A stretch of 64,000 bases of DNA from Hydrolagus colliei (GCA_035084275.1 CM068769.1:186001-250000), one strand, 5' to 3'; shown: positions 4,099 through 58,614, numbered from the stretch's first letter. Notes: generated by a model not told the origin, from the sequence alone. Numbers and translations: made by a program.

Positions 4099-4241
4099 NN
4101 NNNNNNNNNNNNNNNNNNNNNNNNNNNNNNNNNNNNNNNNNNNNNNNNNNNNNNNNNNNNNNNNNNNNNNNNNNNNNNNNNNNNNNNNNNNNNNNNNNNN
4201 NNNNNNNNNNNNNNNNNNNNNNNNNNNNNNNNNNNNNNNNN
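4099..4241. other. Assembly gap (143 N)
   Basis: Run of N. Confidence 1.
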
Positions 4242-9197: not shown

Positions 9198-12049
9198 GAA
9201 ATTACCAGACAATCAATGGAGAGTATTGATTAGACCTGAATGTACTGCAAGTTCCATATCTGTGGTGCCGCTTGCCTGAACTGACACGTTTTATCATAGA
9301 ATCATAGAATCATAGAATTTTACGGCACAAAAGGAGGCCATTCGGCCCATCTAGTCTGTGCCGGAATCTGTTGATCTGCTCCGTGACGTTTCACTGCCAG
9401 TCCCGCTCAAACCGTCACGCGCACACACACACACACAAACACACAGTTCCTCCTGCCACACACACAGACACCCCTCCCCACACGCAAATACACAGACCAC
9501 CCACACATTCCCTCACGTACATAAACAGAGACTCCCCACCCCCCTAATCCCCAGCACACACAAACAGAGACACACAAACCCACACACAAATAAACAGACC
9601 CCCCCCCCTCACAAACATACACAGAACTCCACCCCCACACTCTCTCACGCACACACAGAACTCCCTCACACCCATTCACATACAGGCGCAGTTTAAAGCA
9701 GGAAGCAAGCAGCAGCTGAGATCTTATCTGACAGGTGGTGGTGAATTTAAATCTTTATTCTCCAATGTGACGCTGCAGAGGCTTAGAAATATGTAGCACA
9801 GAACAATTTAATTGGGGATATGTGGGGTCAATTGATTGTGACCTATCTTCAGATGAGCCAATTTTGGAGGGCAGACCTATGGAGAGTGAGCATTTGGTCT
9901 CATTTGGCCGTTACTTCAGTGATACATTTCGGTTCTGCTGCAAAGCATCAGAATATCTGTAGTGCAGACAATGTCGACTAAAGTAAATTCATCTATTTGT
10001 CTGATCAGACTCTGCGGATTGTGCTGCTAGTTCGCCCCACCCTCCCCCGCCACACATCCACACCAACCTTCCTAACACTCCTCCGTCTTTGCCCGGCGCG
10101 TCAATCCAACCGCACACTATTTATCTCTCTATCTCTATCTCTCACACACAAACATACGATGTAAAGCAGGAATCCAGAATGCTGCTCAGACGTCAATTAA
10201 AATGTAACCTATCACTTCTCAAAGAGGCAACATAGAGCCATGAAAATTTTAGGACATCTAAGAATGCAAACATAATAAAATCATAATGCTGCAGTGTGAA
10301 GCTAAAGTCAATGGCAAGTAAGGAGGATATGGGATGTTCCAGAGGCAAGTGAAAAGTTTTTAAAGATAGGCGGAAGTGTGTCCCATTTATGTCTTTAAAT
10401 TTCCCTAGCTAAAAACAGCAAATCGGTGACATCTCTCATGATTTCGTGGAAAATATGTGTTTTTTTACCAAATGCAACAACAACAACATTACATTCATAT
10501 CGCGTTTTTCGCGTCTGGAGGACGTCCTAAGCCATTGGACAGTTACTGCTTCAGAACCACGCTGAGGACAGGGAGTGCGAAGGGGAGAATAATGAATTGC
10601 TAATGGGTCCATCGAAGAGAAGAGTCTGGAGGCGAGAATAAGGAGGTCAGGGAAGGGCCGAGGAGGAGGGAATTCGGAGCTTCAGAGTTTGGGTGCAGAG
10701 TGGCTGAAGGCTCGTCCGCCGGTTTAAAGACGGGTGGATTGGGGGCATGGACTAGGCCAGACCCTGCTGAACGGAGGTAGTGGGCAGGTTGGTAAGGGGA
10801 CAGGAAGTAACGGATATAGGGTGGGGAGAGGTTGCGGAGGGCTATAAATGGAAGCACTATTATTACTTTTGATATTGCACGCAAAGACAGGTGAAGGAAC
10901 TACTACGGTTTTCAAACAATCTGGAAGAAGATCAGTGTCCAACTACCATCAAGGAAACAAGAGAAATATGGGGACCTTGAACATATTCACAATAATAATA
11001 TTTGCATTTGATGTAGCGCTTTTCACATGTTATCGATGTCCCAAAGCGCCTCACAGGTTATACTGTAAAGTAAGTTAACTGTATATTTGTGAGTGAATCG
11101 CGGCAGCAAACTGCACACAGCAGTGTCCCACAAGCAGTCGTGTAATGAAATGACCAATTTTATTATTGTGATTTTTTGGACGGATTACGATTGGGCGCGT
11201 GGAGAAAGAACACTTGTACAAGATTTCACCCTGACCTGACTGGATACGAACTCAGGTCTCCCCAGCTTGCAAGACAAGTGCTCTAACCACTAAGCCACAG
11301 GAGCCACACAGATTGGCTGCTTATTGATAGCCATTAACCTCTCACGTTTCCCCCAAGACATGAAATTCTGCATCAGACACAAGCAAGGCTCAGCCTCTGT
11401 CTGATTTCATGGGCCACGCTTCCGTCACTGTGTCAGGAAGCACGATGAAAGACAAAACACGAGCAAATATATCCATCTATGGTAACATGGCTGCTGATTG
11501 GTTAATCTTACCATGATACAAAAAATATATTTTCTACATATCCGCAATCTATTAATGATATGGCCGGAGACGTTGGTTTGTCTGGACCTGTTGTGTGGGG
11601 TTGGACGATAAGGAGTTTATTGGCTGATAGCACTGGCTTGATGTCCATCACATCACTCTCGCATTGCCAAGGGGCGATGGTGCGGTCACTAGTGATTTAC
11701 CTAATCCTGAACACTCTCACATGTAAGTTAATGGTTACTGAACTATCTCCATAACTATCTCCATAATGTAATCGCAATCATATTACTTTGCTTTGCACTT
11801 GTTAATATTACTTGTTAATATTAATATCTTGTTAACAGGTGATCAGTGAACATTGTACACACTAATAATATAACAGATGGAATTTCTCTCCACCGAATCA
11901 CTCAGATTTATATCACTTTTCACAGTATTGGCGTTTTGTTTAGTGTCCCAAATAAATATAATTAATTATTCTCAATATTATTTGCGTATCAATAGAGTTT
12001 ATGGCTTTTACAGTTGATGATTTGATGATAAGGAGGAAATATATATTAA

Positions 12050-16900: not shown

Positions 16901-17582
16901 ATCCGCACTACCGTTGACGAGCGAGTCTTCAGCCACTCTGCCCCCAACATCTGAAACTCCGTCCCGCAGTCCTCCACGTCGCCCACGTCCCGGCCTCCTT
17001 GAAAATCTAGCCTCAAGGCTTTCCTCTTAGACAGCAACTGACAAGTCTCCCCTTCCAGCCCACACACCCAGTCCTCAGCATGGTTTTGAAAATGTAACTG
17101 TCCATCACCTTGCGACGCCCTGCTGACGGGAAAGGAGCTACAAAAATACAATTTTGTTATGGTTGCTGTTGTTTGTTGCACAGTTTCTATACTGAGGGAT
17201 AGATGTCTGCTTCATTTTGGAAGACGGTTGAGCTAGAGGTGAAGCTTTGGAGAGGTCTGCAGCACACTACGGAAAGTCTTGCTTGTTGCACTTTCGACTA
17301 TTGGTATAACGAAATAATAAATGGAAAGAAACACGGTGTTTGCAAGCGGACTTGGTGAATTGCATCTGGACGTGTTGCGCTCAACTCGTTCACTAATTGC
17401 TGTCTGCATTTATTGTAACGTATAATGATGTGAGAGTTTAGCTGACAAGCTGACGGGAGGGGAGCGTGGTTTCCTCTGAGTCTGGCTGCTGAAGTGTCTG
17501 CTCCCCGCAGGGCCTCAAGGCCAGACCAAGATTCTACACAAGTTTCAAACAGAAGGATAATGCCTATGTATAAAACGAAGGC

Positions 17583-17621
17583 AGTTTTTGTACGAGCCTT
17601 GCAGTGTAGCCAACCATAGTG
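17583..17621 (-). other. 23-RSS of V 17622
   Basis: CACTATG - 23 nt - ACAAAAACT. Confidence 0.88.
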
Positions 17622-17934
17622 GAAAGACTAAAGGAACAGTAATACACTGCGCTGTCAGATACCAGCAGCTCAGAGATGGATAATATGGTGGAATAATTAA
17701 ATTTCTGTAGCTGAGCAGAGAAACGGTTTCCAAATCCTGTGCCTTTGACTGGATTGCCACTCCAAGAATAGCTGAGGACTATAAACTCGGGCTGTTTGTC
17801 TGGGTAATATCTGTACCAGTAGACAATGTAACTGTTGGCAGTAGTGGAATATGTGGAAACGAAATCGACAGTATCTCCTTCTTTCTTACCCACCGTGGCA
17901 GCTTTCTGACTGACAAAATCGGCGTCACAGAGTT
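17622..17934 (-). CDS. TRAV/TRDV: TCR alpha/delta V exon, open ORF but 1st-Cys replaced by Ser
   Basis: Acceptor gtacag|AA. Reads ELCDADFVSQKAATVGKKEGDTVDFVSTYSTTANSYIVYWYRYYPDKQPEFIVLSYSWSGNPVKGTGFGNRFSAQLQKFNYSTILSISELLVSDSAVYYCSFSL. Confidence 0.92.
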
Positions 17935-18140
17935 CTGTACTAAACAAGGGAAAGCACAGCTAAACATTCACAGAATCATAGAATCTTATGGCACAAAAGA
18001 AGGCAATTCAGCCCATCGAGTCTGTGTCGGCTCTTTCAACAGAGCAGTTCAATCCCACTCGCCAGCTCTCTCTCCCCATTACTTGTTGAAATGGAGCTGA
18101 CAATCAGCAGCGACACTGAATTAGCTCAACACGACCTCAC

Positions 18141-19273: not shown

Positions 19274-19280
19274 CTAAGGA

Positions 19281-19319
19281 CCTTTTTGTACGAGAACGCA
19301 ATTGACTCTTATCACTGTG
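19281..19319 (-). other. 23-RSS of V 19320
   Basis: CACAGTG - 23 nt - ACAAAAAGG. Confidence 0.9.
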
Positions 19320-19638
19320 TAGCGCGCAGAGAGAGCGAAAGCACAGTGGTACACGGCAGCGTCACCCAGCTGAACATCAACGATGGTTAAAAATAACCTT
19401 TTTTCAGGTTTATTCATTTGAGAATAAAAGCGGTTCCCAACGCCCTTCCCTTTGCCATTGCTGTTTGACGTACTCCGCCACAGAACCATTTGGGGTGTTT
19501 GACCCGAGTATTGCCGGTACCAATATAAGTCATAATACCGAGATGTCGTGGAGTAGGTACAGTTAGTTTGAAATATTTGGTCCACTGTCAAGTTGACCGA
19601 GGAATAGGGTTGAGAAACTGAATCTCCACAGCTCAGGC
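19320..19638 (-). CDS. TRAV/TRDV: TCR alpha/delta V exon, apparently functional (delta-like)
   Basis: Acceptor ttccag|GC. Reads GLSCGDSVSQPYSSVNLTVDQIFQTNCTYSTTSRYYDLYWYRQYSGQTPQMVLWRSTSNSNGKGKGVGNRFYSQMNKPEKRLFLTIVDVQLGDAAVYHCAFALSAR. Both Cys and the Trp are present. Confidence 0.93.
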
Positions 19639-20249
19639 CTGGAATAAGAATATAAAACAGTGATGGTCAGTGTCTTTACCTGACATCTCGAAACACTTCA
19701 CACCATTCTTTATATCAAGTAGTTAGACTGTGCGTTGAGCAACAAACACGGCATCCCAATAGCACACACAACTCTGGAAAGATTGGCGTGTGGAGTAAGG
19801 AAAGGTAACTCATATATTGCCTTGCCGGATAGGGACCCTGCCTCTCTCATTTTCCAGGCGACCCTCCAAACACAGAGCTACAAGATAAAACTAATAAAAA
19901 CTACGCAATGAATAACGAACAATGATGATACCTACGTTCCTTTCCAGGCAGATCACAGCGAAACCTCGGGCAAATTTAACTTGCTCCACATGCCTGATAA
20001 TAATCCGTCCAAAAGAATTGCAACACCATAATAAACGTTGGTCCCTTCAATCCATACTTGCTCGTTGGACACTGCTGTGCGCAATTGGCTGCCGCGTTTC
20101 GCCCAAAAAGATACAGACAATTCACTTCAGCATATATCTGTAAAGCGCGTAGAGGCGTCGATAAGACGTGAGAAGGGCTATATCAACTGCAATTCTTATT
20201 ATTATCATAACAATGACTGAAACATCGGATATTTGCCTGAATTGGTTAC

Positions 20250-27405: not shown

Positions 27406-28704
27406 CTTATGAGGGCGAAATAACATAAAATATAAACAAAATGGCATGCAGATTGCTTCTTGATCAATATTAGTCATTGGTGAGACAAACGGTTGTACAT
27501 CTAAGCTGAAGCTGCGAAAGGTTACATGAGGGAATCTATGTCAACTGTTACAGGAAACACCTGTTGCAGTGCAATGTCCATTAGTAGCAGAAGTAGCTTA
27601 ATTTCATGTAAGTTGCAGCTCATGTTATATGTGTCATTAAGGCACCGCCTACTGGTGAGTAGCTGCAACAGCACGTGGACAATTGGAGACATGTGATCGC
27701 AAATTGGTTTTGTGCCTGTCTTAACTTCCCTGGTCCTATCTCCTCCTTTGGAAATTGATACATTAGTCTCATTTCCTGCTCATTCCTCAGGTTGGTGGGA
27801 AATTAGACTCAAATCCAATTCGAAATTTGTGTGCGTTTCGCCCACAAAATATTCAGTCAATTAACTTTATAGTGTATTCTGCGAAGAGCTTTCAGGCGTC
27901 AAGAAGACGTAAAACGCGATATGTCAAATGCAAGGACTAATATTATTACTATTTACATTCCTTGACGTTTATCTGCTTATATATAATCCCGCAATATAAT
28001 TTATTTCTCTACGCTTCCCCATTATTCATTGCTATCAATACAAAGAGGCTCCGAAAATGTATAACTTTCTGGTTCAATCCTTCCACCTTGCCCACATTTA
28101 CACCACACACATCATGTGGTCTACTGTAGTTCAGTGGTTAGAACGCTTGCCTTAAAAGCTTGAGCCCTTTGTTTCGAATCCAGGTAGTACAGGGCGAAAC
28201 CTTGGGCAAGTTTACTTACTCTACATGCCTACTAATAATCCGTCCCCAAATTCCTATTTTAGCAAGACCATTTTAAACTATTTAAGTCAAAATAATATAT
28301 ATTTAACAACACTAATCCTTACATTTGACAGTACGCTATATCACATCTTCGAGATGCATCAAAGCAATTTGCAGAATGTATTTTAAACGATTTAACTGCT
28401 GTTTGCTCGCATCAGTCATCCATTGAAAGAATGTTCAATTTATTATTGGTGGTAGTTGTAGTATTATTTCGAAGGAAGTTATGCCCCTGGAAAAAGGATT
28501 CACCGATCAACAATCGACGGATTCCTAGTTATAGCTCAGAAAACCGATTCCCGTGTGTGGAGTCAGCAATTTTGCTGAACATTTCGCATTGTCGGGAATC
28601 GAACCCATTTGTATCTCATTTGTGAGGCGAGTGTTTCTCTGCCGAGCTACAGGACTCCACATGGTAGTTTTTGTAGGGCGGTAACGTTGGTCTGTGTCTC
28701 TGTA

Positions 28705-29017
28705 GGGCTCGATGCAGAGTAATACACCGCCGTGTCTGTAACGCTCATTTGGGATATATTTAGTGGAACGGTTCGCCCCGCTTTATCCAAATTTGTTAAG
28801 AAACGTTCTTTTGCAAATTCTTCACGAATCTCTTTGTTGGTGCTGATGTGTACCATGAGGATATATTCTGGAGCTGCGTTGGGACAGTGACGGTACCAGA
28901 ATATATATGGAGTGCTGTCGCTTGTAGCTGTATAATTACACAACATATAGGCATATTCCCCCTCATTCACTGTCACAGTAGATTGGAGCTGTGTCATAGA
29001 GTCTCCACCACAAAGCC
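28705..29017 (-). CDS. TRAV/TRDV: TCR alpha-like V exon; ORF open but 2nd-Cys replaced by Ser and RSS heptamer defective (probably non-functional)
   Basis: Acceptor tttccag|GG. Reads GLCGGDSMTQLQSTVTVNEGEYAYMLCNYTATSDSTPYIFWYRHCPNAAPEYILMVHISTNKEIREEFAKERFLTNLDKAGRTVPLNISQMSVTDTAVYYSASSP. The RSS is TACAGAG-23-ACAAAAACT (28666-28704). Confidence 0.9.
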
Positions 29018-29336
29018 CTGGAAACCAGAAATACGTCATCATTCAATACAACAACAACAATTCTAATGATTCTCTTGTGATTAATGTGGCTGAAGTCGTT
29101 GATACGTCTCCAAATTCAAAGCATACAATTTTACAACACAGAAGTTTCATGTAAATGTTGACAAACTGGACAAACTTATCGCCATGTCCTTTCAGGGAAT
29201 TGAACAAAATCCCTATGAACACTGATCTAATGGACACTACAACTCTAAAATCTCTTGTTGGAGTATTAGTTATATTATGCAATGAAATTTAGGCGTTGGA
29301 TAATACATTCGGTAAAAATACTTATAGAATCCTTAC

Positions 29337-31105: not shown

Positions 31106-34100
31106 GATTTTGTTTAACGTTAATTGAACAAACAATAACTGCATAATAGTATCAGGGGAGATGTACAAAATGGAAATCGGTTCTCGGCTTTAAGTCTCTG
31201 AAAATTTTTACAGTATTGAACTGACTTGAGGCGCAAAGCAATAATAATTATCGTGGCTATTGATATAAGTTTTTACACATTCTCTGCATATCTTGTGGGA
31301 AGCTCATGGAATTTACCATCAAGTGAATTAACCGTACATTTGTGGTGACATTTGTCAGAGAATTGAGCAAAGCAGATTCCCACAAAGCTTCGTGGATAGA
31401 TGTGACCAATTCATCAATTTTGTTAGAATGACTACAGGTAATGTGCTGGGATTCAATTGGGGCATGATTAATTATATAAACACGTGTTAACTGATGAAAA
31501 TGTATTGGACGTTTACAATAGAACACTGACGAGAAACGCAAAACGTGATCCTACGTAATCGTGATGAAGAAACCCATACTGTTTGCGCTTTGTTTTTGAA
31601 AAATTAATTATATCTGAATTGAATACACTAATACCGCATTCAGCCACTGGGCAGTTATCGTTTTGTGAACACAAGGAGTGAATAGAGTGCAACACCGCCA
31701 ACTTTTGGACATATGGTTGTACTGCAGACTTTCATGTCAATGCCCATCTGCCTGGACTTGGGGAATATTGCATTCTCTCTCCCCAGCCAAACACGCCCAC
31801 CCCCACCCCCACCTCGCCGCACCCATTCAGTGCCATATTGCTTTCAGTTATTGGGTGAGTCAGAAAACTGGTAATAAGGTGCTCTGCGGAATTTTAACTA
31901 ACTATTTTTATCCCTGCTGTCAGCACATATTTGTCAGTCTTATCAACGGGTTCTGTGTTTGAATTGCTTCTGTGTATTTTGAATTACAGCAACAATAGCA
32001 TATACTAAGATAGCACTGCTTAAACAGAGTAGTGCGTCAGAGCTCGACATAGTTGTGGAGCATGATGCTTGGTCAGAATGAATGGGGAGAGGATCGTATG
32101 TACACCCACCCCTACATTTATCCGCTCACCATCCTCACACAACACAACCAGCTTCTCCCCATTCTCGCCTTCTCGCAGGCCATCTCAATATTTTACAGTT
32201 ACAAGAAATGTATGTAAGTATCAACGGTTTTACAATGTGCTCAACTGTGTCTCCTATTGGACCTCAAAATATTTAGAGAATCCAAACAAATCCCTACTAA
32301 TTCTGTGCAATTCACCTAAACATGGGATTTCTCATCTGTTCGAATGCAATGTGCTCTCCCTCTCAATGGAAAAAATGCATTCTCACTAACCAATTGTAGA
32401 GAGTATAAAGCTTTATATCCGCACACCAATGAAAACAATGCCTAAGAAAACCAACATTACATTGGTCATTTTAATACAGGAATGTTTGTGGTACACTGCA
32501 TTGCGAAACTGGCTGCCACAGTTCACATACATTTTACTGTATATGATGTGAGGAACCATGGGACGCCTAGACGACGTGGAAAGCTCTATTTCAAATTGAA
32601 GTTATATTATTCTCATTCTTATGATGATGACTGATAATCTCGTCCCTCCTCTTACTTTGTTTCATGTCCCCGGCCCTTCCCACAGCCTCATTGCCAAATG
32701 GGTTATCAGCTTATTATCTTCCCAATTCAGGAACTCCATCCGAGATTCACTTTGCAGTCCAACGTCACATTCTGACTTTCAAATCTAGCTCAAAACGTTC
32801 CTCTTTGAATCGTCATCACTAGTTCCCCCATCCCCATACACTCATCCCTCCCCTTCGCACCCCAAGCGCAAACACCAGCTCAGATACCAACCCCAATGTG
32901 TGCAGTCACTCGGGACGTTGTATCAAGAGAAAAAATATAGTTTATACATCTGATTTATGGTTGTTATCTCATGCTGACACAGACATTTAGATGGGATACT
33001 GATGACAGACCAGCCCGTCTGGCTGATGGAACGGTCTGCACTGCTGTTGACTGAACATGTGGGAATATGATGTGAACTGTAAATTAAATCACTGCCAATT
33101 AAATAAAAAAAACTATTGTAATAATAGTCGTAATCTTTGCATTGCTATTGCAGCATTTCACACATTAACGACGTCTCAAGGCGCTTCACAGAACAAATTG
33201 TAAAGTGAGTTGACTATGTATTTTGTGGTCAAAATTCGGAAAGCGATTTCCGCACAGCAGTATCCAAAAAAAGTCGTGGATTGAAATGACCAATTCTATT
33301 GCATTATTGTTGTTTTATTTTCGACGGATTATTATGTGGCTTGTGTGTGTGGAGTAAGGAAACGTGTCCATGGTCTGCACGCAGGTCTCATGCATATAAT
33401 GCGAGTGCTCGAACAATTGAGCGACAGGATCTACAAATTTTCAGATTTCGAACACAGATATATTCAAACTCACAGAGACTTTTGGTACTGTATGAATGTA
33501 ACTTCTATATAATCACGAGCATGTAAAGATTAGCGTTGCTAGTTTGTATCTATTGCCTTCTCCTTCTCTCTGAAGAATGTTTATCTTGACGCCAGTGAGT
33601 GAGCAATACGCATTACAGAATTTTCCTGATCTTTTTGCTCAACCCTCTCATCTATACAATCAATTAGGTTACCACAATGCAGTACGCAGACACTCTCATC
33701 ATAATAATCCCTTGCCTACTGGAACAACGTCAGTGAAAACAAGAGCAGTTGGAGACCACAGCTAGTTTTCATATCCCCCCAACTCCAATTCCACATCACA
33801 GGTCATGTCTTATCACCAACCAAAACATTGCTTGTTTTCGTACATTCTTCATCCAAATCATGTCCTATTACATACTTTATCATTCTTTAGCATTACATTC
33901 AGGCATGAAAAAGATGAAAAAGCAAGAGAATATATATATCTACATATGTCTCTCTCTCTAGAAATGTTCCTTTCTAAAAATTGTGTCAAATATATGTTAG
34001 CAACGCTTCCTAAAAGAACACCTATTTTCCCGTCAACATTAATAAAGTGATTTGAGCCATTTTACTGAAGCGAACGCTGCGAAATAAAACGTGACAGTTA

Positions 34101-34347
34101 TTGCTGTACTTGTAATTTTTTGGTGCATGTAGCCGCTCAGCCTTCAAGCGGTCAAATCCACATCATAGCTTACAGGAGACAGACAGAGAATTTGGAAGTG
34201 AGTGAAGTGAGTGAAGTGAGAGAATTTGGAAGTGAGTGAAGCGTGCGAGCAAAGGCGGGAAATTATAGCGAGACTAAGAGAAAGATGCCATGGACTAACT
34301 TAGAGGATAAACTGGAGACGGGCTGGATTCTGAGCTTTGAGAGGAGA

Positions 34348-34508
34348 TCAATGGAGACGTTGGCGCGACTGTTTAATAACCCTTTCTTGTCTCTTGTCTG
34401 GTTTCATTGGTCGGCATTCCACCACCAGCAACACAATACTAACCAGCAACACTACGATGGCCAGGCTGATCCGGACACTGTTGATAATTTCCATCCTATT
34501 CCAGCAAC
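34348..34508 (-). CDS. TM/cytoplasmic exon of an LRC-like (LILRA/NKp46/FCAR/GPVI-type) activating receptor
   Basis: Acceptor ctacctcacag|GT (phase 1). Reads CWNRMEIINSVRISLAIVVLLVSIVLLVVECRPMKPDKRQERVIKQSRQRLH*. Confidence 0.8.
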
Positions 34509-35680
34509 CTGTGAGGTAGACATGATTAGTCAATTAATCATGATTACACTTGCCAGCTGGTTGTCCAACAAAATGGAAAACAACAACTTCGATTTGTACA
34601 GCGCCCTCCTCGCAGGGCGGCGTCTCAACCCATCACCATGGTTAAACATATTCATTCAAGTTTGAAAGCGACACATCTGAATACTCCAATGTACAGTGAA
34701 ATGGATTAGAAGGTATTTAGGATGGTTGGCACGGAAACAACGACATTAGCATTTTATTTGAGTTCGCCTTTGATGTCGGGAATACTTCCCAATGAGAAAA
34801 AGTAGGAGATGGTAGAACATGGGTGAGATACGGCTTGATGAACTGGGGGTAAGTTGGATAGCGTGGTAGAGGTGAGGTGATAGAGGATGCAGCCGGTTAT
34901 TGGGTGGGATTAGGGGAGAGACGTGGAGGCGAGAGGAGATGGGGTGTAGAATGTGCTGTGACGCGCAGAGGGGAGAGTGGGGAGGGACGGTAGGAATATG
35001 TGGACGAAAGCAGGAGAGCAGAGAGTGAATAGGGTTTAGAGAAGTGGGAGAATAGTGAGAGGGAGAAAATCGGGGAGACGGACTGATGAAGAGATAAAGA
35101 TAGGGAGAGAGCAGAGAGAGGGTGGGTTGTTCGAGAGAAGAGTGCGAAAGCGTGTTAGAGGGAGTAGACGGAGAGAGGGAGAGGATAGTGACACGTGGGG
35201 AAAGAATGGCTAGAAGGTGATTGGGGGGGGGGCGTAGTGGAGAGAGGGGTCAGAATGGGGGAAGTAGAGATGTTGAAAGCGGGTATGGTTGGGAGGAAGA
35301 CGGGAGGATGGCAAAGGTAGATGGGGGAGAGCGGTTATAGAAGAGGCGGATTTGACAGTGGAGAGAGTTCGGAGAGGAGGAGAGACTGTGTGGGTCGCAG
35401 GAGTAGGGAGTGTGTGGAATCGAGAGGCAGGGGAAAGAGAGAGGGGAAAGATCACTGCACACGGGACACAATCTCTGCTGTGTAGCTATCACTTGGGAGT
35501 TTGGGTCTGGAAACGTTTTTACCGAGTGGATCAGTTTCCGTCCGTGTCAAACACTCAAAGTGACACAAGGAGACAACAAGGAAATGTGATCCTCTAGTGT
35601 AAAGGATGGTTACATCAGGGGCAGGTGTAAGTGGTCCAAAGGCAAAGATACTATTGTGTGAGATTTTACTCTGCTCTTAA

Positions 35681-35957
35681 TTCGCAGAAAGATTCTCGCT
35701 GGATCACTCTCTGGTGATATAAATTCCCGGCCGCCTATGTGTGTAGTACATTTACACGAGTAATTACCTGCACTGATGTTCGATGAGGTGAATGTAGCCA
35801 TGTTGTTTTTCTTTGTAACTGTTTGAGATATGATAAGCTCTCTGTCTTGGTAGAAAAAGAATTTGCTGCCAGGATGATTCACAGAACACGAGATCTCAGC
35901 GGTATCTCCTATCCCGGAATTCCGTGTTCAGGGAAATATTGGGTTTCTGGAGAGGAT
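35681..35957 (-). pseudogene. Disabled duplicate C2-type Ig exon
   Basis: DPLQKPNISLNTEFR, then a frameshifting deletion, then GDTAEISCSVNHPGSKFFFYQDRELIISQTVTKKNNMATFTSSNISAGNYSCKCTTHIGGREFISPESDPARIFL. The donor position reads ttaaga instead of gtaaga. Confidence 0.82.
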
Positions 35958-37037: not shown

Positions 37038-37319
37038 GCTGTACAGAGATTCCCACTCTATCACTCTGTGTTGATGTGAATCCTCTGCCGCCGATGTGTG
37101 TAGTATAGTTACACGAGTAATTCCCTACACTGATGTTGGATGAGGTGAATGTGGCCGTGGTGTTATTCTCTGGAGCTGGTGAAGTGATCAACTCGTTGTC
37201 TCTGTAGAAATGGAAATTGCTGCCAGGATAGTTCCCAGAACACGAAATAACAGCACTTTCCCCCCACACAAACACCCGGGAGACTGGCTTCACGGAAATG
37301 GTTGGTTTCTGGACCGGAT
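37038..37319 (-). CDS. Intact C2-type Ig-domain exon (LRC/LITR-like)
   Basis: ttttgattccag|AT...C|gtaaga; 282 nt, phase 1-1. Reads DPVQKPTISVKPVSRVFVWGESAVISCSGNYPGSNFHFYRDNELITSPAPENNTTATFTSSNISVGNYSCNYTTHIGGRGFTSTQSDRVGISVQ. There is no RSS. Confidence 0.88.
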
Positions 37320-38380: not shown

Positions 38381-41300
38381 ATGCTGACGGAGAGGAACAC
38401 TGCCCTTCTATGAGAAATTATACAAAAATTCTCTCCGTTGCCTCTTCGCGTGGATTTTTACGAGATCTTACTTCCATTTGAGAACTGTAGAGTGCATTTC
38501 TGGCTCCCCTGACTAAACATCCTCATATACAGTTGGGAATATGGGGAGTCAGTCTACAGCGGATTCGGATCCAGAATCTTTAATTCCCTCCAATATGTCG
38601 CGAAGCGACCTCTGTGACCGCCTCAAAACCCATAGAACCAGTTACTCTATTCAAATGTGGAGCAAAAGACTGATTCACCTCCCACTCTCACCACCTTTCA
38701 CCAATATCTCTCCCGCCATCACTCACACCATCAGTATAAGGCCTTCAGCCTTCAAATAATCCAGGATCATAGTGGTTATAGCACCCGCCTCTCGCCAGCG
38801 AGAGACCTGGGGTTCATTTCTAGGAGGTCGAAATGTTGTGCAAACTTCCATACACGAAATAGCCTATAATAATCGATCAATTAAAAAAACTAACAAAAAT
38901 CTATGACTGTTTGGGGGACCCTGTAGGGCACAATTGGCTGCAGCATTTCACCCACACATATGCAGTCCATTCACTTTACAGTATACACTGAAGTGTCTAG
39001 AAGGTGGAAAAGGTCCTCTAACAATTTTCCATCCTTCCGCGGTGGAAGTGCACCCCAGAGACTGCCTGATTCGTCCCACCTTCCTCTCGTTCAAGTTCTA
39101 ACTGACGAGCTAGCTGTGTAATTGTGGTATTAGTTGCATCACCCCACACCCACCCTTCTGTCACCCCCATCGCTGCCCCACTGCGTAATTAGCCCAATTG
39201 CAGTTCGATCCCGCATGACTCCCATTACTTCATCAGTGCCCAACACCCAGCGCATTGAGGCGTTATCGGAAGGAGTTGTTTTAGATATTGTTTTTTGTGT
39301 AGCCAAGCCAGGAATTTTACACATCCTGGGGCATACCTGAATTGAAAGTCAGTTTTGTTATAGCAACTCACTTCCCCACTGTGTGTGGGAATTTACTGTG
39401 AGTAAGTCGGATGTTGTGTTTGCCATGAAAAAATAGTCAATGCGGTTTCAATCGAGATTGAGGCGTGGAGTCTTCCGAAAGTAAAAGGGTGTTGCTATTC
39501 TGAAAACAACTATTTCATTCTTCGTTTTAAATAGATCCTCTTTCATGATAGATTAAATCATGACTTTTCGCGCACTAATTATACAATGAGTTTACAGAGG
39601 ATGTGTTCTGTGTAGCCATCTGAGGTGTCTCAAGCACGTGATATCAACTGCATTTGTTAGTACTATTGTCCATTGGTCACAAAACAGTCAGGTTATTGTG
39701 GGAGGCTTTACAGATTGCTGAGAGAGCGCAGGCTCTCTCATCACGCGTACCTACTACATAGATTCTCACTCCGTCGCTCATTGGTGAATCAAACCTGGCA
39801 CGTACATTTGGTTGGCGTACATACAACAACAACAACAACAACAATTTACGTTTATATAGCGCCTTTCACGTCGGGAGGACGTCCCAAGGCGCTAAACAAG
39901 AGGCGTGTGACCCGAGCTGGGAGTGGAGTGTTTGGGAAGGGGTGAAACACGAAGGGGAGGTAAAAGAGTTCGGGGTGGAACAAAAGGCACGATCGAAGAG
40001 GAAATTCTTCAAATCGGCCTTGAAAGAGGAAAGGAAGAGGCGAAACGGAGGGATTGAGGGATGGCATTCCATAAGGTACACCGGTAACTTCCATTCATAA
40101 TCTGTGTTGAGGTAAATGTTGCGGTGTAACCATTCTGTTCAGCTGTTGCTGATGTGATGATGTTGCGATCATTGTATAAATAGAATTAACGGCCAGCATA
40201 GTGCCCAAAACACCTGATCTCAGCTCTTTCCCCACTACCAAACACACCAGCGGCTTGGTTTAGGCATATGGTCGGTTTCATGAGCGGAACCGGAATTAAA
40301 ACACTGAAAATATAGTCTCGCACATGCCTTCTCTATTCTGCACTGTGACAAAGAATATTTATATTGAAAATAACACCTGTCAATGGTAGATATATTATTT
40401 TGAGTTGGAACATAACGCATGCCTGAGCAGGGGACTGCAATTAACACGATATTTCAGCAGCTTTTAATAGTGTTCGCTCTGAGATTGGGAATCATTCTGG
40501 CTCCACGTCTTAGAATCTCGTTTCTGAAGCTGACGGTATTGGGTTGAAACAGACGTTGATGTCACAGTCTAGGCAGACGCTCTAGAGCAGCGATGAATGA
40601 GAGGGTCAATAATGATATACTGTCGTCTCGAAGAGACAGCAATTCCATAAGCACATGAACTTATGTCTCCACAAGAAAACAGAACAGAGTTTTTATTGCT
40701 GTCGTGACAAACCATCCTCCAGTTACAATTGGAATGTAGGGCTGCCAGGCTTCAGTGGATTGTGATCAGGGTCCTGGTTCTTACTTTTAAAATCTCACAA
40801 ACGCAGGTCCTCTAATCTCCATTTATTTGTATCTCAATTCAAAGACCTAGCCTCCACCAAGTCCTCCTACGAACAGGGCGGGCCCGTTGGTAAGAGGACA
40901 GGAAGTCATGGATGAAGGGTGGGACGAAGTTGTGGAGGGCTTCAAATGTGAGGAGCAGTATCTTGAATTGGAGCATTTTGATGGTGGGGAGGCAACAGAG
41001 TCGGGCAAGATGGGGGAGATGGGATCACATAGTTTGGAAAGGTTTAGGACAGGGGACTCAGCGTTCTGGATTATCTGCAGCCTGTGGAGCGGGGCATTGG
41101 AAAGGCCGACCAGCCATGCATTTGGATAAAAGAGTCGGGAATAATAAAGGCATGGGTGAAGGTTTCAGCGGATTTGGGTTTAGGTAATGGAGGAGTCGGA
41201 AAATGCTGCAGAGGTGGGGAGAGGCAGAGCGACTGATTGGGGGATGTGGGGGAGGAAAGGCAATTGATGGTTGTACAATGCACCTTCGTTCCTGCCTGTC

Positions 41301-42115: not shown

Positions 42116-42151
42116 CTGCAGATTCCACAGTCTTTCCCTCTAGAAGAATCA
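42116..42151 (-). CDS. 36-nt signal-peptide mini-exon of the LRC-like gene
   Basis: ttgtattttcttctgcag|TG ATT CTT CTA GAG GGA AAG ACT GTG GAA TCT GCA G|gtgagt. It is phase 1-1, and joining to the Ig exon gives ...KTVESA-DPVQKP. Confidence 0.68.
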
Positions 42152-44724
42152 CTGCAGAAGAAAATACAAGATCCGAAGAAGAATTATTAATAGTGTAATT
42201 CACAAAACAGGTGGCTGATCTGAAACAGAATAGCAACGTACTGATATACCCGGTCTCTCATTCAATCAAGGCATTTTTAACAACACGTCAGCAGTTTCAA
42301 GTCGTCACGAAAAAGGAGCCAGTGGTGGAGTAAACCAAAGCACAGACACGATTTGGAGAGAGTGGGGACACGGGTTAGGTCTCCTGAAGGACAGCGAGCA
42401 GTAACGCTGAAACGATGGTGTACGAGCTCTTGCACGGATACGATGAGAACAACAGGGGTAGTAGGACCTCTTGTCTGAACGGCCATTTTCTGTGCCGCGA
42501 TTTCCTGTGGAAGGATTGTTTGTGTTCTTGATTCGTGTCTCTGAGAAGAAGAAGCAGTTCATATACGGCCATAAAGCAGAACCTCCTCTCCCCTTGCTCC
42601 TATTTCCTCTCTCCTCTCATCGACATTTCCTTCTTCTCTCTATCGTCCTGCCAATCCTCCCTCTCCTCTCTTTCTTCATCAACGCTATCTCCTCTCTCCT
42701 CTCTCTCATCTACTTCGTCATCACTCCTCTCGAATTATATCCTCCTTCCTCTGCTGTCTCCTCCCTTCTCTCATTGGATATCCTCTCAACTGTTTTTATC
42801 CTCTCGAATCTCCTCTCCTGTCTTATCTACCATTCCCACTCTGTGCGTTCTGGAAACGTAGGAAGATAGTAACAGGAATGGGCCATTCAGCCCGTCCAGT
42901 CTATCTTGCCATTTCATTAGATTGTGTGATCTCCTTACGGATATTCTTATCTGTATCTCCACTGATGCTTTCCATTGAAATTTCCGGTTTTCTCCCGTAT
43001 TATTTCATACCCCGGTTTACCGATCGAATTATTGAAAGTATGAATGGATCAAGCATTTAACGCACCTACAAAGAGATAAATATAGCTTTCTACAACTCTG
43101 TGATCGAAAAAAATATTTCATTAATTAATTTTTTAATGGCCTGGTTTTACTTTTACGACTATGCACCCATTGTTTTGCACTCACCCACCAGAGGAATTCG
43201 CTTCACCCATCCACTGGCTGCTATGTATGCTTCTCTCTCTCCTACCTCTTGCCCCCTCTCTCCTTCCCTCTCTCCTCTCTCTGTGAGGGAAAACAATAAC
43301 AATAATTACATTTACGCAGCGCATGTAATGGCAGATGGACGAACCAAAGTGAACAATGTCGGATCTGTAAGATCTCACAAGACGGAAGGTATGGGCTAGG
43401 AAACTGATCGACTCCGCCCCCTCCATCAACCATCTCCAATAGTTTTATCGATGAATTACTTTACCCTCCCATCTCACCTCCACCTGTGTTTGAGTGTTTG
43501 TGTGTGTCCATGTGGGTGTGTGTCTCTGTTTGTCGGTGAAGTTCTGTTTGTGTGACATTCCTGCTCCACTCGCCCCTACCCAACCCCTCGGCTTACCATC
43601 TTTTCCCGCCTTTCTCTCCCTAACCCCATTTCCACAGATGTTTGTGGGGGACACCGCTGTGCGCAATTTTGTTGGCACGTTTCGCCCACAAATGCACAGC
43701 CGATTCTCGTACTATCCCTGAACCGACTCGTTCCTCCATTCTCTGGTCTCTACCTGAAGCACAGCACCTCGGGACGTCCTCCCGTCGTGAAAGGCGCTAT
43801 ATAAACGTAAGACTCCCGTCCTGCTTCCTGCCTGCCTGCTTGGTTGGTTGGTTGTTGAATTGCTTGGTTTGTTGGTTGGTTGATTGGTTGGTTGATTGAT
43901 TGATTGATTGATTGAAGAAGGCGAAGTGATTGTGTGATGGAGTTCTATACTTCGGTGCCGATAGGCTAAAGTGGGCGGATAATGCGGTGGTTACGAAAGA
44001 TGCAATAGGTCAAGGAGCAGAATAGGGGGCTAAATAGCAGTTCAGAGTAAAGCGGGATTCCGAGGACAATTTCGGAAATGAGATTAGCAACCACATTCAC
44101 CAAAGAAGAAAAATATCAGTTTCATCTTGACTACTTGGAAGTGCAGATGCAGCCAGTGGTGGACAGTGGATAATGGATAGTGGCTGTATCAGGCCTGCTC
44201 CGCGTCCACCGCCCTAACCGCCCAACCATCGGCGGCTGGGCTTTCAGCCGCTCTACTCCCACATTGCGGAGCTCCATCCCACATCGTCTCTGCCTTACTT
44301 ACTCCCTTTCCTCCTTCAAGGCTTGTCTCAAGTACTTCGTTTTTGACCGCACATTCAGCTGCCCCACTAACTCTTCCTGATCTCCCCTGTCCTTAGCCTT
44401 TCCCCAACCACCGGCTACCCACTACCACCACCCTCCTACCAACGCTCGCGTCCCGACCTGACTGTTCAGCGCTTTGAGACGTCCTCCCGACATGAAAGGC
44501 GCTATATAAGTGCAATTTCGTTGTTGGTGTATAGTGAAATTTACTATGTATTTGTGGGCGAGACATGGCAGCCATTTATAAACTAAATTGAAGCAACAAT
44601 CATGGTTTAAAATGACCAGTGTAGTCTTGTAACAACAATTGTGCAAGCAACAGAATAATAATAAGATCAATAATACAACAGTTGATATCCCCCCACACAG
44701 TGACGTTTCAAAGATTAACATCAC

Positions 44725-44900
44725 AATAACTGTGGGCGTGTCCCACACTCCTGCCAATCACTGGTTACCAGGAAGTCAGTGGGCGGGTCCGTCCCAATGA
44801 GCCGCGCGGGGTACATCGTCATGACGTCACGTGCGTATTGACCGTTGGCGGCGGCGACTCGAAAGACAAAATCAACACAGAGACAGAGACACTTGATCAC
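44725..44900 (+). promoter_or_regulatory. CpG-rich promoter-like module, copy A (inverted relative to B and C)
   Basis: GGGCGTG, CCAAT x2, GTTACCAGG (RFX half-site), GGGCGG, TGACGTCA (44822-44829) overlapping CACGTG. Confidence 0.6.
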
Positions 44901-46724
44901 TGCAGAGCTCCGAGGGGAGCTGTTTGGCGGTGCGTCGTGTATAGGGCGACAGTGTGTGGGTGGGGGCTGTGTGTGCATGTGGTGAGGGCTGTTTGTGTGT
45001 GTTGGGGGGCCGTTATTGTGTGCGTTGGGTATCTGTGTATATGAGGCGGGACGCGTTTGCGTGGGGTGGGGGCTCTGCATGTGTGGGCGGTGGTGGCTGC
45101 ATGACTTGGGCGGATGTGTGCGAATGGCGCGCTGTGTGCGTGTGTGCATGTGTGCGTGGGAGGTGGCTGTGTGTTGGCGGGGGTGGGGGGGGAAAGTTGT
45201 GCGCTGTAATCCGTCCCCCCTCCCTTTGTGTCCCTGATAATAAACTATGAAACAGTGCTTGATCACGTCTTTGAGACGTCTCATAGCGTTTCAGAGGATA
45301 CAAACTTAAAGTGAATTGACGGTGCTTTGTGGACGAAACATTGTAGTGAATTGTGCAGAGCAACATCCCATGAACAGTCGTGGACTGAGTGATAATAATA
45401 TTATGATTATTGAGGGATTATTACACTGGAAGAGCGATCACTAATCAACCAACAAGCATTTTCCGACCTGTTGGAGTCTGGCAGCTCAGGGTGAAACCTT
45501 GTATAAGTTTCCTTACTCCACACAAAGGTCTGATAATAATCCCTTAAACAAAAGTCGGTCACTTCAATCCACGACTGTTCGTGGGACACTCTTGGGCAAT
45601 GCACTGCCGCGATTCACCTACAAACATACATTCACTTCACTTCACTGTATAATCCGTAAAGTTGAGATGCATAGAATACATGATAAGGCACGATATCAAA
45701 CGCAAGGATTATTATTATTATTACTGCTGGTAAACAAAACCGTGTGTGAATTCAGGAAAATTAACCAACATTTCATCCTAACCCTCCTTGGAATGCAACC
45801 CAGGCCAACTCACTCGCTGATTGCAATCTATACATACACACAGCCATACATGCACACGTTCACATACACACACACTGTTATACACACACACATGTACATT
45901 GACTCTCGCACACCACACAGACAGAGACATTGGCTTCCATACTTTGCTCACGAAACATAATCAACTTAATCTATTGATTATGCAGTAACGCGATTTGTGA
46001 TGTCACGAAGACGGGATGAGGTGCTATACCAAATGCAAAGTTTATTATTGTGATTAGACACAGAGAAACATAAAGAGTGGCGTACAGTGTTTCACTGTAT
46101 GTGTGTGTGAGAGAATGAGTATTTGCACAATGTTATCTGTGATTTCTGATTTCCAGAGACAGAGGCCTGAATGCGAGAGAGACAAACATAAAGGTCTGTG
46201 TGAGTGTCTCTAAGTGGGTGTAGCTCAGTCTATCGAGAGCATGGTAGTGTTTCTCTGTATGTGTATATGTATTGGTGTATCATTAATAGAGACACTTTGA
46301 GGCAGACAGAGGGGATTCCAATGTTTATCTGTGTATGTATATGTCTCTCATTGTGTGTGTCTCTCTCTGTGCAACTCAGTGTGTATGTAAGTCTCAGACA
46401 CATAGAGGGCAGTGTATATGATTGAGTGTCAATTGTATGATTGCATCTATGTCTGCATTTCTGTGTCACTTTGGATGACAGGAGCCACAGAGGTGTGTGA
46501 TCAGAGAGAGAGGTTGGGTATGTGGTTCAGTATCTCTATATGTCTTTTTCGCACTGTGTCTCAGCGTGTATGTGTTTGTCCTTCTCTGCCTCTCTTTCTC
46601 TCAGTGAGTGTGTGAGAGAGACAGGCAGACAAAGTGTGTGTGAGTGATGCACAGAGAGATGGGGAAAATGTGTGTGGGTAGGGGAGCATATGTGCATGTG
46701 ATGGGGTGAAGGTGTATGAACGTG

Positions 46725-57295: not shown

Positions 57296-57334
57296 GGTTT
57301 TTGTACGAGACTTGCAGTGCAGTCTATCACTGTG
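57296..57334 (-). other. Consensus 23-RSS of V 57335
   Basis: CACAGTG - 23 nt - ACAAAAACC. Confidence 0.97.
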
Positions 57335-57649
57335 ATGAGAGTCGAAAGGCACAGAGATACAATGCGCTGTCAGACACCAGCAGGTCAGAGATGGACAAAC
57401 TGGTAGAAGAATTGGATTTCCACAGCTGAGCATCGAAACGGTCTCCAATCCCTGTTCCTTTGCGTTGACTGTCACTCCAAGAATATTTCAGAAATATAAA
57501 CTCTAGCGGCTTCCCTGGGGTAAGTCGGTACCAGGAAAGGGCGTAGTCGCTTTCAGTCGTGGTACAGGTACATTGCAAAGTCACATTTCCTCCTTCTTTC
57601 GTAACCATCGTGGCATCCGTCTGACTGACAGAGTCCCCACTACACAGAT
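57335..57649 (-). CDS. TRAV/TRDV: TCR alpha/delta V exon, apparently functional (delta-like)
   Basis: Acceptor tgttgcag|AT. Reads DLCSGDSVSQTDATMVTKEGGNVTLQCTCTTTESDYALSWYRLTPGKPLEFIFLKYSWSDSQRKGTGIGDRFDAQLWKSNSSTSLSISDLLVSDSALYLCAFRLS. Confidence 0.95.
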
Positions 57650-58614
57650 CTGCAACAGACAAACGATAAAAAGATTATTCAAACTTTGGCTGAATTAATG
57701 TTTCAGCGCCTTAGGCCGTCCCTCCGAAGGGAAAGGCCCTATACCCCTGTAGTGTGATGTAAATGGAATCATAATAATCACCTATTATCATATAATGCAT
57801 TATCAGGTCATTGATATACTTGAATAGGCTATACAGTGATTTACTCTATATCTTGTGGGCGAAAGAGTGCAGGCAATTGGACACAGCAGTGTCTCACATA
57901 CAGTTGTGGAATCATTTATCAAAGTTTCATTGAAAATCATTAAAGCAATATTATCTTCGTAACAATCCACCCTCCTATAAACTAAAATGAGTGAGGGGAG
58001 AAATTATTATTAGTTGTATTTTTATTCGCTCAGTTCAATTGAGTGGTAAAGCATACTGATTCGAACTTGCTGATAGTAAACAAAGGCTTGTGAGTCGAGT
58101 AAGCATAGAAAATGCTTGATAAGGCGCAGTAAGGAAAGTTGCCTAAGCTTTCACCCTCCCGGTAAGTGAACCCAGACCCTCTCGTATGTGAATCGAGTGA
58201 TGTAAATACTGAGCTACAGGTCTACCCACTGCAGCTCAGTGGTTACAGCACTTGTCTTACAAGCGTGAGACTTATGTTCGAATCTAGGCAGGTCGGGGCG
58301 ATACCTTGGGCAAGTTTCCTTACTCCACACACTTAATAATAATCCGTCCCAAAACATACAGTAATAAAAACTGGTCATTTCAATCCACAACTATTTGCGC
58401 AGGATGCTTTTGTACGCAACTGGCTGCCGCGTGTCGCTCTCTCACAAATATACAGTCAATTCACTATACAGTATATTCCGTCAAGCGCTATTCAACGACT
58501 ATAAAATGTGGAAAGCGCTATATCAAATGCATGGATTACGTCTGGTTATTAAAATTGTCGTTGAAATGCTCTGACCTTCAGCAGCAACACCGAATTAGCT
58601 CAAATCAACCTCAC

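Follow-up and report, generated by a model that had tools for sequence, protein, structure and literature searches.

An NxxR-type membrane-anchor exon from a predicted activating immunoglobulin-like receptor gene of the chimaera Hydrolagus colliei

Among the elements of activating leukocyte receptors, the most conserved is the NxxR subtype of transmembrane (TM) segment, in which an asparagine stands three residues before an arginine. The described receptors with such an anchor (also termed "TM1"), which we use here for comparison, are LILRA2, PIR-A, NCR1/NKp46, GPVI, OSCAR, FcalphaRI, TARM1, IGSF1, chicken ggFcR and the Xenopus ILR, XFL and SLAM-like receptors. The "TM1" regions of the Xenopus Fc receptor (FcR)-like proteins show high homology to the TMs of a set of FcRgamma-associated receptors, namely LILRA2, PIR-A, NKp46, GPVI, OSCAR and FcalphaR, and in co-transfections the surface expression of XFL2 and XFL1.7 was either dependent on FcRgamma or enhanced by it, from which the authors concluded that they associate (PMC2413239). 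The arginine is essential for this association (PMC6557307, PMC4536121). Further conserved features of NxxR TMs are (i) the residue three before the arginine, (ii) a preceding DYT motif and (iii) a TM whose C-terminal end is negatively charged; the reasons for the conservation of NxxR are unclear, such receptors often reach the cell surface without FcRgamma, and the subtype has been traced back only to amphibians and birds (PMC6557307). In this work, we analyzed a stretch of 64,000 nucleotides (nt) from the chimaera Hydrolagus colliei (GCA_035084275.1 CM068769.1:186001-250000; hereafter the window, with positions counted from its first letter), in which a previous reading of the sequence alone had noticed an NxxR segment at 34400-34508. 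It is well supported that this segment belongs to the TM/cytoplasmic exon of an activating-type member of a multigene immunoglobulin (Ig)-like receptor family in a holocephalan. That the receptor would couple to an adaptor of the FcRgamma/CD3zeta type can reasonably be inferred from the motif.

The membrane-anchor exon and its homologues

The sequence-only reading had given no strand for the NxxR segment and had described it as a receptor TM of the FcRgamma-associating subtype followed by a basic tail of 20 residues without tyrosine. The segment is encoded on the minus strand, where translation of the reverse complement of 34330-34518 gives YLTGCWNRMEIINSVRISLAIVVLLVSIVLLVVECRPMKPDKRQERVIKQSRQRLH and a stop; read on the plus strand, the reported interval contains nothing comparable in three frames. 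A 140-residue open reading frame (ORF) on the plus strand at 34243-34665, which overlaps the exon, finds no match in Pfam and is in all likelihood spurious. The exon is described as follows:

34348-34508, minus strand: TM/cytoplasmic exon with stalk (R)CWNRME, TM IINSVRISLAIVVLLVSIVLLVVE with NxxR, tail CRPMKPDKRQERVIKQSRQRLH and a TGA stop at 34350-34348; identified by translation, homology to Callorhinchus milii, a chance test and alignment with tetrapod TMs

The product of this exon is (R)CWNRMEIINSVRISLAIVVLLVSIVLLVVEC, followed by a basic, tyrosine-free tail and the stop codon. It opens with a consensus splice acceptor (...cctcacag/GTTGCTGG; in the minus-strand DNA, ...cctcacag/GTTGCTGGAAT...), the first exon base being 34508, exactly the upper coordinate of the sequence-only reading. 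The first two exon bases complete a codon and the intron is thus of phase 1, as is usual in Ig-superfamily genes. Within the product, the Asn stands at -3 to the Arg (IINSVRISL...), the Arg is residue 6 of a hydrophobic stretch of 23 residues and the only basic residue in it, which places it in the outer third of the helix, and it is followed by 17 apolar residues and by an acidic residue, Glu, 18 positions after the Arg (R+18). The tail after ...VVEC, RPMKPDKRQERVIKQSRQRLH, is short, counting 21 residues and not the 20 first reported, and comprises nine basic residues (eight Arg/Lys and one His), two acidic ones and no Tyr; it therefore contains neither an immunoreceptor tyrosine-based inhibitory motif (ITIM) nor an activation motif (ITAM). 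The Asn at -3, the outer-third Arg, the acidic helix end and the tyrosine-free tail agree with the earlier assignment to the FcRgamma-associating NxxR subtype (PMC2413239, PMC6557307). The very short stalk, RCWNRME, holds an unpaired Cys (34505-34503) and a second Cys follows directly after the helix (VVEC, 34413-34411); these could provide an interchain disulphide and a palmitoylation site.

We aligned the TMs of the window exon, its C. milii paralogues and the tetrapod IGSF1 and IGSF1-like NxxR proteins, anchoring the alignment at the Arg. Primate IGSF1 has a Glu at R+18, as in the window, and the turtle and lizard sequences have it at R+17, so that the tetrapod IGSF1/IGSF1-like TMs overall carry Glu or Asp at R+17 or R+18.

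The closest relatives are found in C. milii. An exhaustive HMMER search with the intact Ig-like exon of the window gene (Ig_A, listed below) and the TM retrieved 554 proteins at E <= 0.001, and the matches at 49-65% identity whose source names were looked up are all from this species, where they are named "IGSF1-like", "alpha-1B-glycoprotein-like" ("A1BG-like") or "DMBT1-like", or are uncharacterised. Many of these relatives have N-terminal SRCR domains and one to six Ig domains of the Ig_A type, and most of the C. milii members have an uncharged TM (...GLAAGIVTAIVITVFILGF...) and tails with the ITIM-like tyrosine motifs VTYATV, IIYANL and PVYATVRV. Two members carry NxxR instead, namely XP_007909116 (P0025/P0151, "DMBT1-like"; NVAR), which ends in ...GTFTTQGIVNVARLIVVITLPLVIIFLLVIQYRPIKKDNSEERVIEDTT, and XP_007882735 (P0152, LOC103171757; NVGR), which ends in ...GYLTTQGIANVGRLILVISLCPLIIVLLVVHHRRIKTYNSQERVSEDTT. 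Both have retained I-x-N-x-x-R and the length of the hydrophobic stretch, along with R-P/R-x-K, ERV and a polar residue at R+18. With a majority of uncharged TMs and tyrosine motifs and a minority of NxxR anchors with tyrosine-free tails, the family looks like a paired one, with inhibitory and activating receptors.

The comparison was extended to genomic DNA with the C. milii locus of XP_007909116 (scaffold MU249866.1:512271-559370, 47 kb). The alignment of the window TM exon with that of XP_007909116 runs from the acceptor across the coding sequence into the 3' flank; the second leader exons of the two genes align as well, together with their flanks. This continuity shows that the window exon is no look-alike and is homologous to TM exons from predicted activating receptors. 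A search of a restricted region with the C. milii TM and tail returned only two isoforms of one gene. The window and the C. milii locus also share many interspersed repeats at 70-78% identity, as would be expected if the window came from C. milii or a near holocephalan relative.

Short hydrophobic ORFs are frequent in AT-rich vertebrate DNA, and one of them might resemble a TM segment by chance. We therefore defined a pattern of N-x-x-R followed by 17 uninterrupted apolar residues with a mean Kyte-Doolittle value of at least 2.0. Translated in six frames, the 64 kb contain it a single time, at the TM exon, and it was found in one of 200 second-order Markov simulations of the window; a stricter version, which adds the acidic helix end and a stop within 35 codons, appeared in none of the 200. 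Besides, a chance ORF would share neither its flanks nor its splice acceptor with a C. milii TM exon, and it would not be preceded on the same strand by related leader and Ig exons that are correctly ordered and of compatible phase. A chance origin is effectively refuted by these results, and the exon is very probably a genuine and homologous exon of the NxxR type. The acceptor, the Ig-superfamily context and the C. milii homology likewise bear out the earlier view of it as the TM exon of a receptor.

The predicted gene and its receptor class

Upstream of the anchor exon, on the same strand, the window contains leader exons and Ig-like exons, of which one is intact, and downstream of it a possible polyadenylation signal:

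44101-44125, minus strand: predicted leader exon 1 (L1), with ATG, 25 nt coding, MKLIFFFF plus one base, donor G/gtgaat
42116-42151, minus strand: leader exon 2 (L2), 36 nt, (V)ILLEGKTVESA, acceptor ctgcag/, donor GCAG/gtgagt, ending in phase 1
40078-40289, minus strand: dead Ig exon (Ig_C), acceptor AG changed to GG, in-frame TAA, 3' part after ...YRC replaced by an interspersed repeat
37038-37319, minus strand: intact Ig-like exon (Ig_A), 282 nt, phase 1-1, acceptor ttccag/AT, donor CAGC/gtaaga, both Cys present
35681-35957, minus strand: dead Ig exon (Ig_B), 8-bp deletion relative to Ig_A that shifts the frame, donor GT changed to TT
33314-33319, minus strand: first AATAAA after the stop, 1031 nt downstream, tentatively a polyadenylation signal (pattern search)

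L2 was found by tblastn with the leaders of the relatives, and in the DNA alignment with the 36-nt L2 of C. milii both splice sites are kept. The match at 42.1 kb was initially taken for a leader without ATG, which was wrong: it is the second leader exon, and the exon with the ATG lies 1.95 kb upstream. A scan upstream of Ig_A for a signal peptide in one exon gave nothing convincing. L1 is the best candidate in a scan upstream of L2 for an ATG followed by (3n+1) nt and a GT and encoding a hydrophobic peptide; its peptide resembles the leaders MKTFVVLLL and MESLFIIF of the relatives, and the distance between L1 and L2 (~1.95 kb) compares with 2.1 kb in the C. milii gene. Spliced together, L1, L2, Ig_A and the TM exon form an open frame of 167 residues (MKLIFFFFVILLEGKTVESA / DPVQ...GISVQ / RCWNRMEIINSVR...RLH); the splice sites agree with the consensus and every junction is of phase 1. 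Ig_C was recognised as a tblastn match with an internal stop. We also searched the window for an exon encoding an inhibitory-type TM or an ITIM, and none is present.

The repeat that replaces the 3' end of Ig_C resembles a short interspersed element (39822-40071) and has further copies at ~44189-44530, 43763-43810, 10475-10531 and elsewhere; it is abundant both in the window and at the C. milii locus. A short tandem repeat (GAAGTGAGT) of ~5 copies (34195-34241) follows the stop codon by roughly 110-155 nt, presumably in the 3' untranslated region.

Domain type and gene structure together file the gene as an Ig-like receptor of the type encoded in the leukocyte receptor complex (LRC), that is, of the LILR/PIR/NKp46/OSCAR/LAIR type. 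Ig_A is 55-65% identical to the C. milii family domains, and its Pfam matches, Ig_3/Ig_2, are at or just below threshold. A family profile of twelve Ig domains, searched against PDB sequences, matched PIR-B (8e-15), FCRL5 (3e-13) and LILRB2 (5e-11), and further LILRB1, FcepsilonRIalpha, KIR3DL1, LILRA6, NKp46, LILRA5, LILRA2, OSCAR and FCRL4. For the AlphaFold model of Ig_A (pLDDT 86.8), the first 23 fold matches are all receptors encoded in the LRC; the best is LILRB4 (TM-score 0.83), others near the top are LILRA5, LAIR1, NKp46, PirB, CHIR-AB1, OSCAR, KIR2DL3 and LILRA2, and the Fc receptors rank lower. Among the more distant sequence matches, NxxR anchors occur in "IGSF1-like" proteins of reptiles and turtles and in primate IGSF1, a gene placed among the LRC-related ones by Guselnikov and colleagues (PMC6557307). 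In FcR and FCRL genes the second leader exon is 21 bp long (PMC2413239); in the window gene and the C. milii gene it has 36 nt, which is not the FcR/FCRL length. A second leader exon of 36 bp is the rule in KIR/LILR genes, a rule for which the literature searched gave no confirmation. The 64-kb window has V gene segments as neighbours and no LRC marker genes, and is too short for synteny to be judged.

Proposed partner and competing explanations

Based on these results, we propose that a receptor of 167 residues with a single Ig domain may be produced from L1, L2, Ig_A and the TM exon, the dead exons Ig_C and Ig_B being skipped. In its membrane anchor the Asn would lie one helix turn above the Arg, and within the membrane the face formed by both would pair with the conserved Asp of a zeta/gamma-family dimer that is joined by a disulphide and carries ITAMs. 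This partner would be CD3zeta or, if the species has one, an FcRgamma-like chain; ligand binding would then be signalled through the ITAMs of the partner. We hold this whole chain, with the gene expressed and coupled to an adaptor of the zeta/gamma type, with moderate confidence.

The weakest link of the proposal is the partner itself. In shark genomes, Akula et al. detected no FcRgamma, FcRL or C2-only LRC homologues (PMC4016189), which weighs against the proposal as do the points gathered below. Bamboo shark T cells do express CD247/CD3zeta (PMC11372145), and the partner is thus better called a zeta/gamma-family chain than FcRgamma. Our own query with human FcRgamma returned tetrapod matches only, in a search that needs shared words of five residues and is therefore uninformative for chondrichthyans. 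In the literature searched, nothing beyond PMC4016189 was found on NxxR anchors or FcRgamma in cartilaginous fish, and the main text of the elephant shark genome paper does not mention these genes.

Most of the remaining adverse results concern the state of the gene, and would suit an open fossil exon in a decaying, dispersed partial duplicate within the V-gene cluster, not expressed as a receptor; NxxR would then inform on the activating members of the family, such as XP_007909116, and not on function at the window locus. Only one of the three Ig exons is intact, the dead pair lacking one splice site each as well as a reading frame: Ig_C has lost its acceptor, contains a stop and is truncated by the repeat, and Ig_B has lost its donor and carries the 8-bp frameshift, its acceptor being intact and leading, when the exon is read from it, to a premature TGA. 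Two SRCR queries against the window found no SRCR exon, which the relatives have, and with two dead Ig exons the copy could accordingly be a relic. Furthermore, the C. milii gene of XP_007909116 lies on another scaffold, with no V segments in the 47 kb of its locus; the protein collection, queried with Ig_A and the TM, returned only proteins of 55-61% identity and no annotated model containing the window exons; and L1 was assigned by pattern and resemblance only. The ratio of non-synonymous to synonymous substitution (dN/dS) against C. milii is ~0.94 for the TM exon and ~0.56 for Ig_A, and that between Ig_A and the dead Ig_B is 0.50; as the dead exon has a ratio like that of the intact one, dN/dS does not discriminate function here. 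Against decay of the whole copy stands the distribution of the damage. The four exons that a minimal receptor needs all have open frames, consensus splice sites and phases that match, and the loss of a splice site in both dead exons favours their skipping. The two dead exons (~564 nt) have five disabling lesions, whereas the other four have none in their ~504 nt and six splice sites, a distribution for which equal decay of all exons gives a Poisson P of ~0.01; this suggests that the remaining reading frame has been kept up. A skipped exon of this kind need not disable a gene of this superfamily, as KIR2D genes are functional despite their skipped pseudoexon 3. In addition, the acidic residue at the helix end is kept in the window, where the two C. 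milii paralogues have Gln and His. On balance, we consider a relic somewhat unlikely.

A functional receptor might also use its charge differently, with a partner other than FcRgamma/CD3zeta: the options are a DAP12- or DAP10-type chain, a lineage-specific adaptor, a signal for retention or assembly in the endoplasmic reticulum, or homodimerisation, possibly aided by the stalk Cys. The reported absence of FcRgamma from shark genomes would fit such a use, as would the unexplained conservation of NxxR in receptors that often do not need FcRgamma for surface expression (PMC6557307). So would the stalk, which is unlike that of the tetrapod NxxR receptors and has no DYT before the NxxR (RCWNRMEII in the window and TTQGI in the C. 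milii paralogues, compared with DYT or DF in the reptile and turtle IGSF1-like proteins); this absence also counts against zeta/gamma coupling. DYT has been described as a conserved feature of NxxR TMs and not as a defining one (PMC6557307). The position of the charge points the other way. The sole basic residue of the window TM is the Arg at position 6 of 23, in the outer third and not near the centre of the TM, which is the geometry of the zeta/gamma-coupled group and common to the NxxR receptors associated with FcRgamma or zeta. Partners of DAP12 typically have a Lys near the middle of the TM helix. A chain of the zeta family, CD247, moreover exists in sharks. Use of another partner appears quite improbable, and coupling to a zeta/gamma-family chain remains the reading that we prefer.

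The V-segment neighbourhood and comparison with described receptors

Germline V-set segments (GDSV.Q...WYRQ...YxCA) form a cluster around the receptor gene, all of them on its strand:

17567-17959, minus strand: V-set segment
18994-19242, minus strand: V-set fragment
19277-19666, minus strand: V-set segment
23341-23949, minus strand: V-set segment
27104-27379, minus strand: V-set fragment
28647-29042, minus strand: V-set segment
29681-29857, minus strand: V-set fragment
57330-57674, minus strand: V-set segment
61940-62329, minus strand: V-set segment

Canonical recombination signals, with ~23 bp of spacer between heptamer and nonamer, follow several of the segments (at 57.3 kb CACAGTG, 23 nt and ACAAAAACC). 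At least four look intact; those at 17.5 kb and 28.6 kb lack a canonical Cys and are probably pseudogenes. In appearance the cluster is like that of T-cell receptor (TCR) alpha/delta genes, and a PDB sequence search with one V segment did not tell TCR and Ig V domains apart. Between the receptor gene and the next V segments lies low-complexity DNA rich in GT/CA (44838-45370 and 45800-45990), which yields long spurious ORFs rich in Cys/Val and His/Thr on both strands. A run of N at 4099-4241 is an assembly gap or masked sequence.

The window exon is a further NxxR-type activating anchor on a receptor of the LRC type, and its interest is evolutionary. A homologous NxxR exon on Ig domains of the LILR/NKp46 type in a chimaera and in Callorhinchus would shift the origin of this anchor design to the base of the jawed vertebrates. 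In C. milii (the MU249866.1 locus and proteins P0002, P0007, P0151, P0274-P0276) one to three SRCR domains are fused to LRC-type Ig domains with ITIM- or NxxR-type anchors, an architecture of SRCR-Ig paired receptors for which no description was found in the literature searched. This family and the window copy contradict the published absence of LRC-like receptors from cartilaginous fish (PMC4016189). It is tempting to speculate that (i) the last ancestor shared by all jawed vertebrates had both the NxxR/Arg module and paired receptors of the LRC type, against the published view in which LRC-like receptors, FcRL and FcRgamma came with the bony fish, (ii) chimaeras combined such receptors with SRCR domains into an SRCR-Ig paired family, and (iii) a functional single-Ig activating member resides inside the V-gene cluster, perhaps co-regulated with TCR genes and signalling through CD3zeta. 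Taken as a whole, this scenario is unlikely. If it held, the receptor would be a lymphocyte co-receptor loosely comparable to the SRCR-type WC1/SCART of gamma-delta T cells. The question of which ITAM chain was used before the documented FcRgamma, CD3zeta or an undetected FcRgamma homologue, is thereby made testable. Practical use is limited, as the predicted relatives, though unstudied, are public and the window copy is partly decayed. The mechanism is proposed wholly by analogy.

The classical activating Fc receptors (FcgammaRI, FcgammaRIII, FcepsilonRIalpha) and the FCRL proteins have a related Ig fold; the TM signature of the activating classical FcRs, (M/L)Fxx(D/N)TxL (PMC2413239), is missing from the window TM, which is of the NxxR type. 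The inhibitory C. milii members (XP_042201735, XP_007910466 and V9KHJ3, the last from a UniProt accession series that we take to be an elephant-shark transcript set) share with the window gene the Ig domain type, the leader and the exon phases, and differ from it in their uncharged TM and long tails with tyrosine motifs, for which the window has no exons. Closest are XP_007909116 and XP_007882735, with a homologous TM/tail exon (IVNVAR..., IANVGR..., RPIKK..EERVIEDTT) and an Ig domain 61-65% identical, to which the XP_007909116 gene adds a 36-nt L2 and alignable introns. Unlike in the window gene, which has no SRCR domain, the single Ig domain of XP_007909116 follows one such domain, and the longer isoform (P0151) has two; in addition, both NxxR paralogues have Gln or His at R+18 in place of Glu, stop four codons earlier, lack the stalk Cys and the post-helix Cys, and are without the two dead Ig exons of the window gene.

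The described NxxR receptors differ from the window gene in their stalk, which in the window reads CWNRMEII without DYT and with a Cys, a further Cys lying at the inner end of the helix, and in their hosts, the window gene belonging to a cartilaginous fish. In common with it, they have an Asn at -3 to an outer-third Arg, ~17 apolar residues, an acidic helix end and a short tail without tyrosine motifs, with the TM and tail encoded on a single phase 1 exon after the exons for Ig domains of the LRC type.

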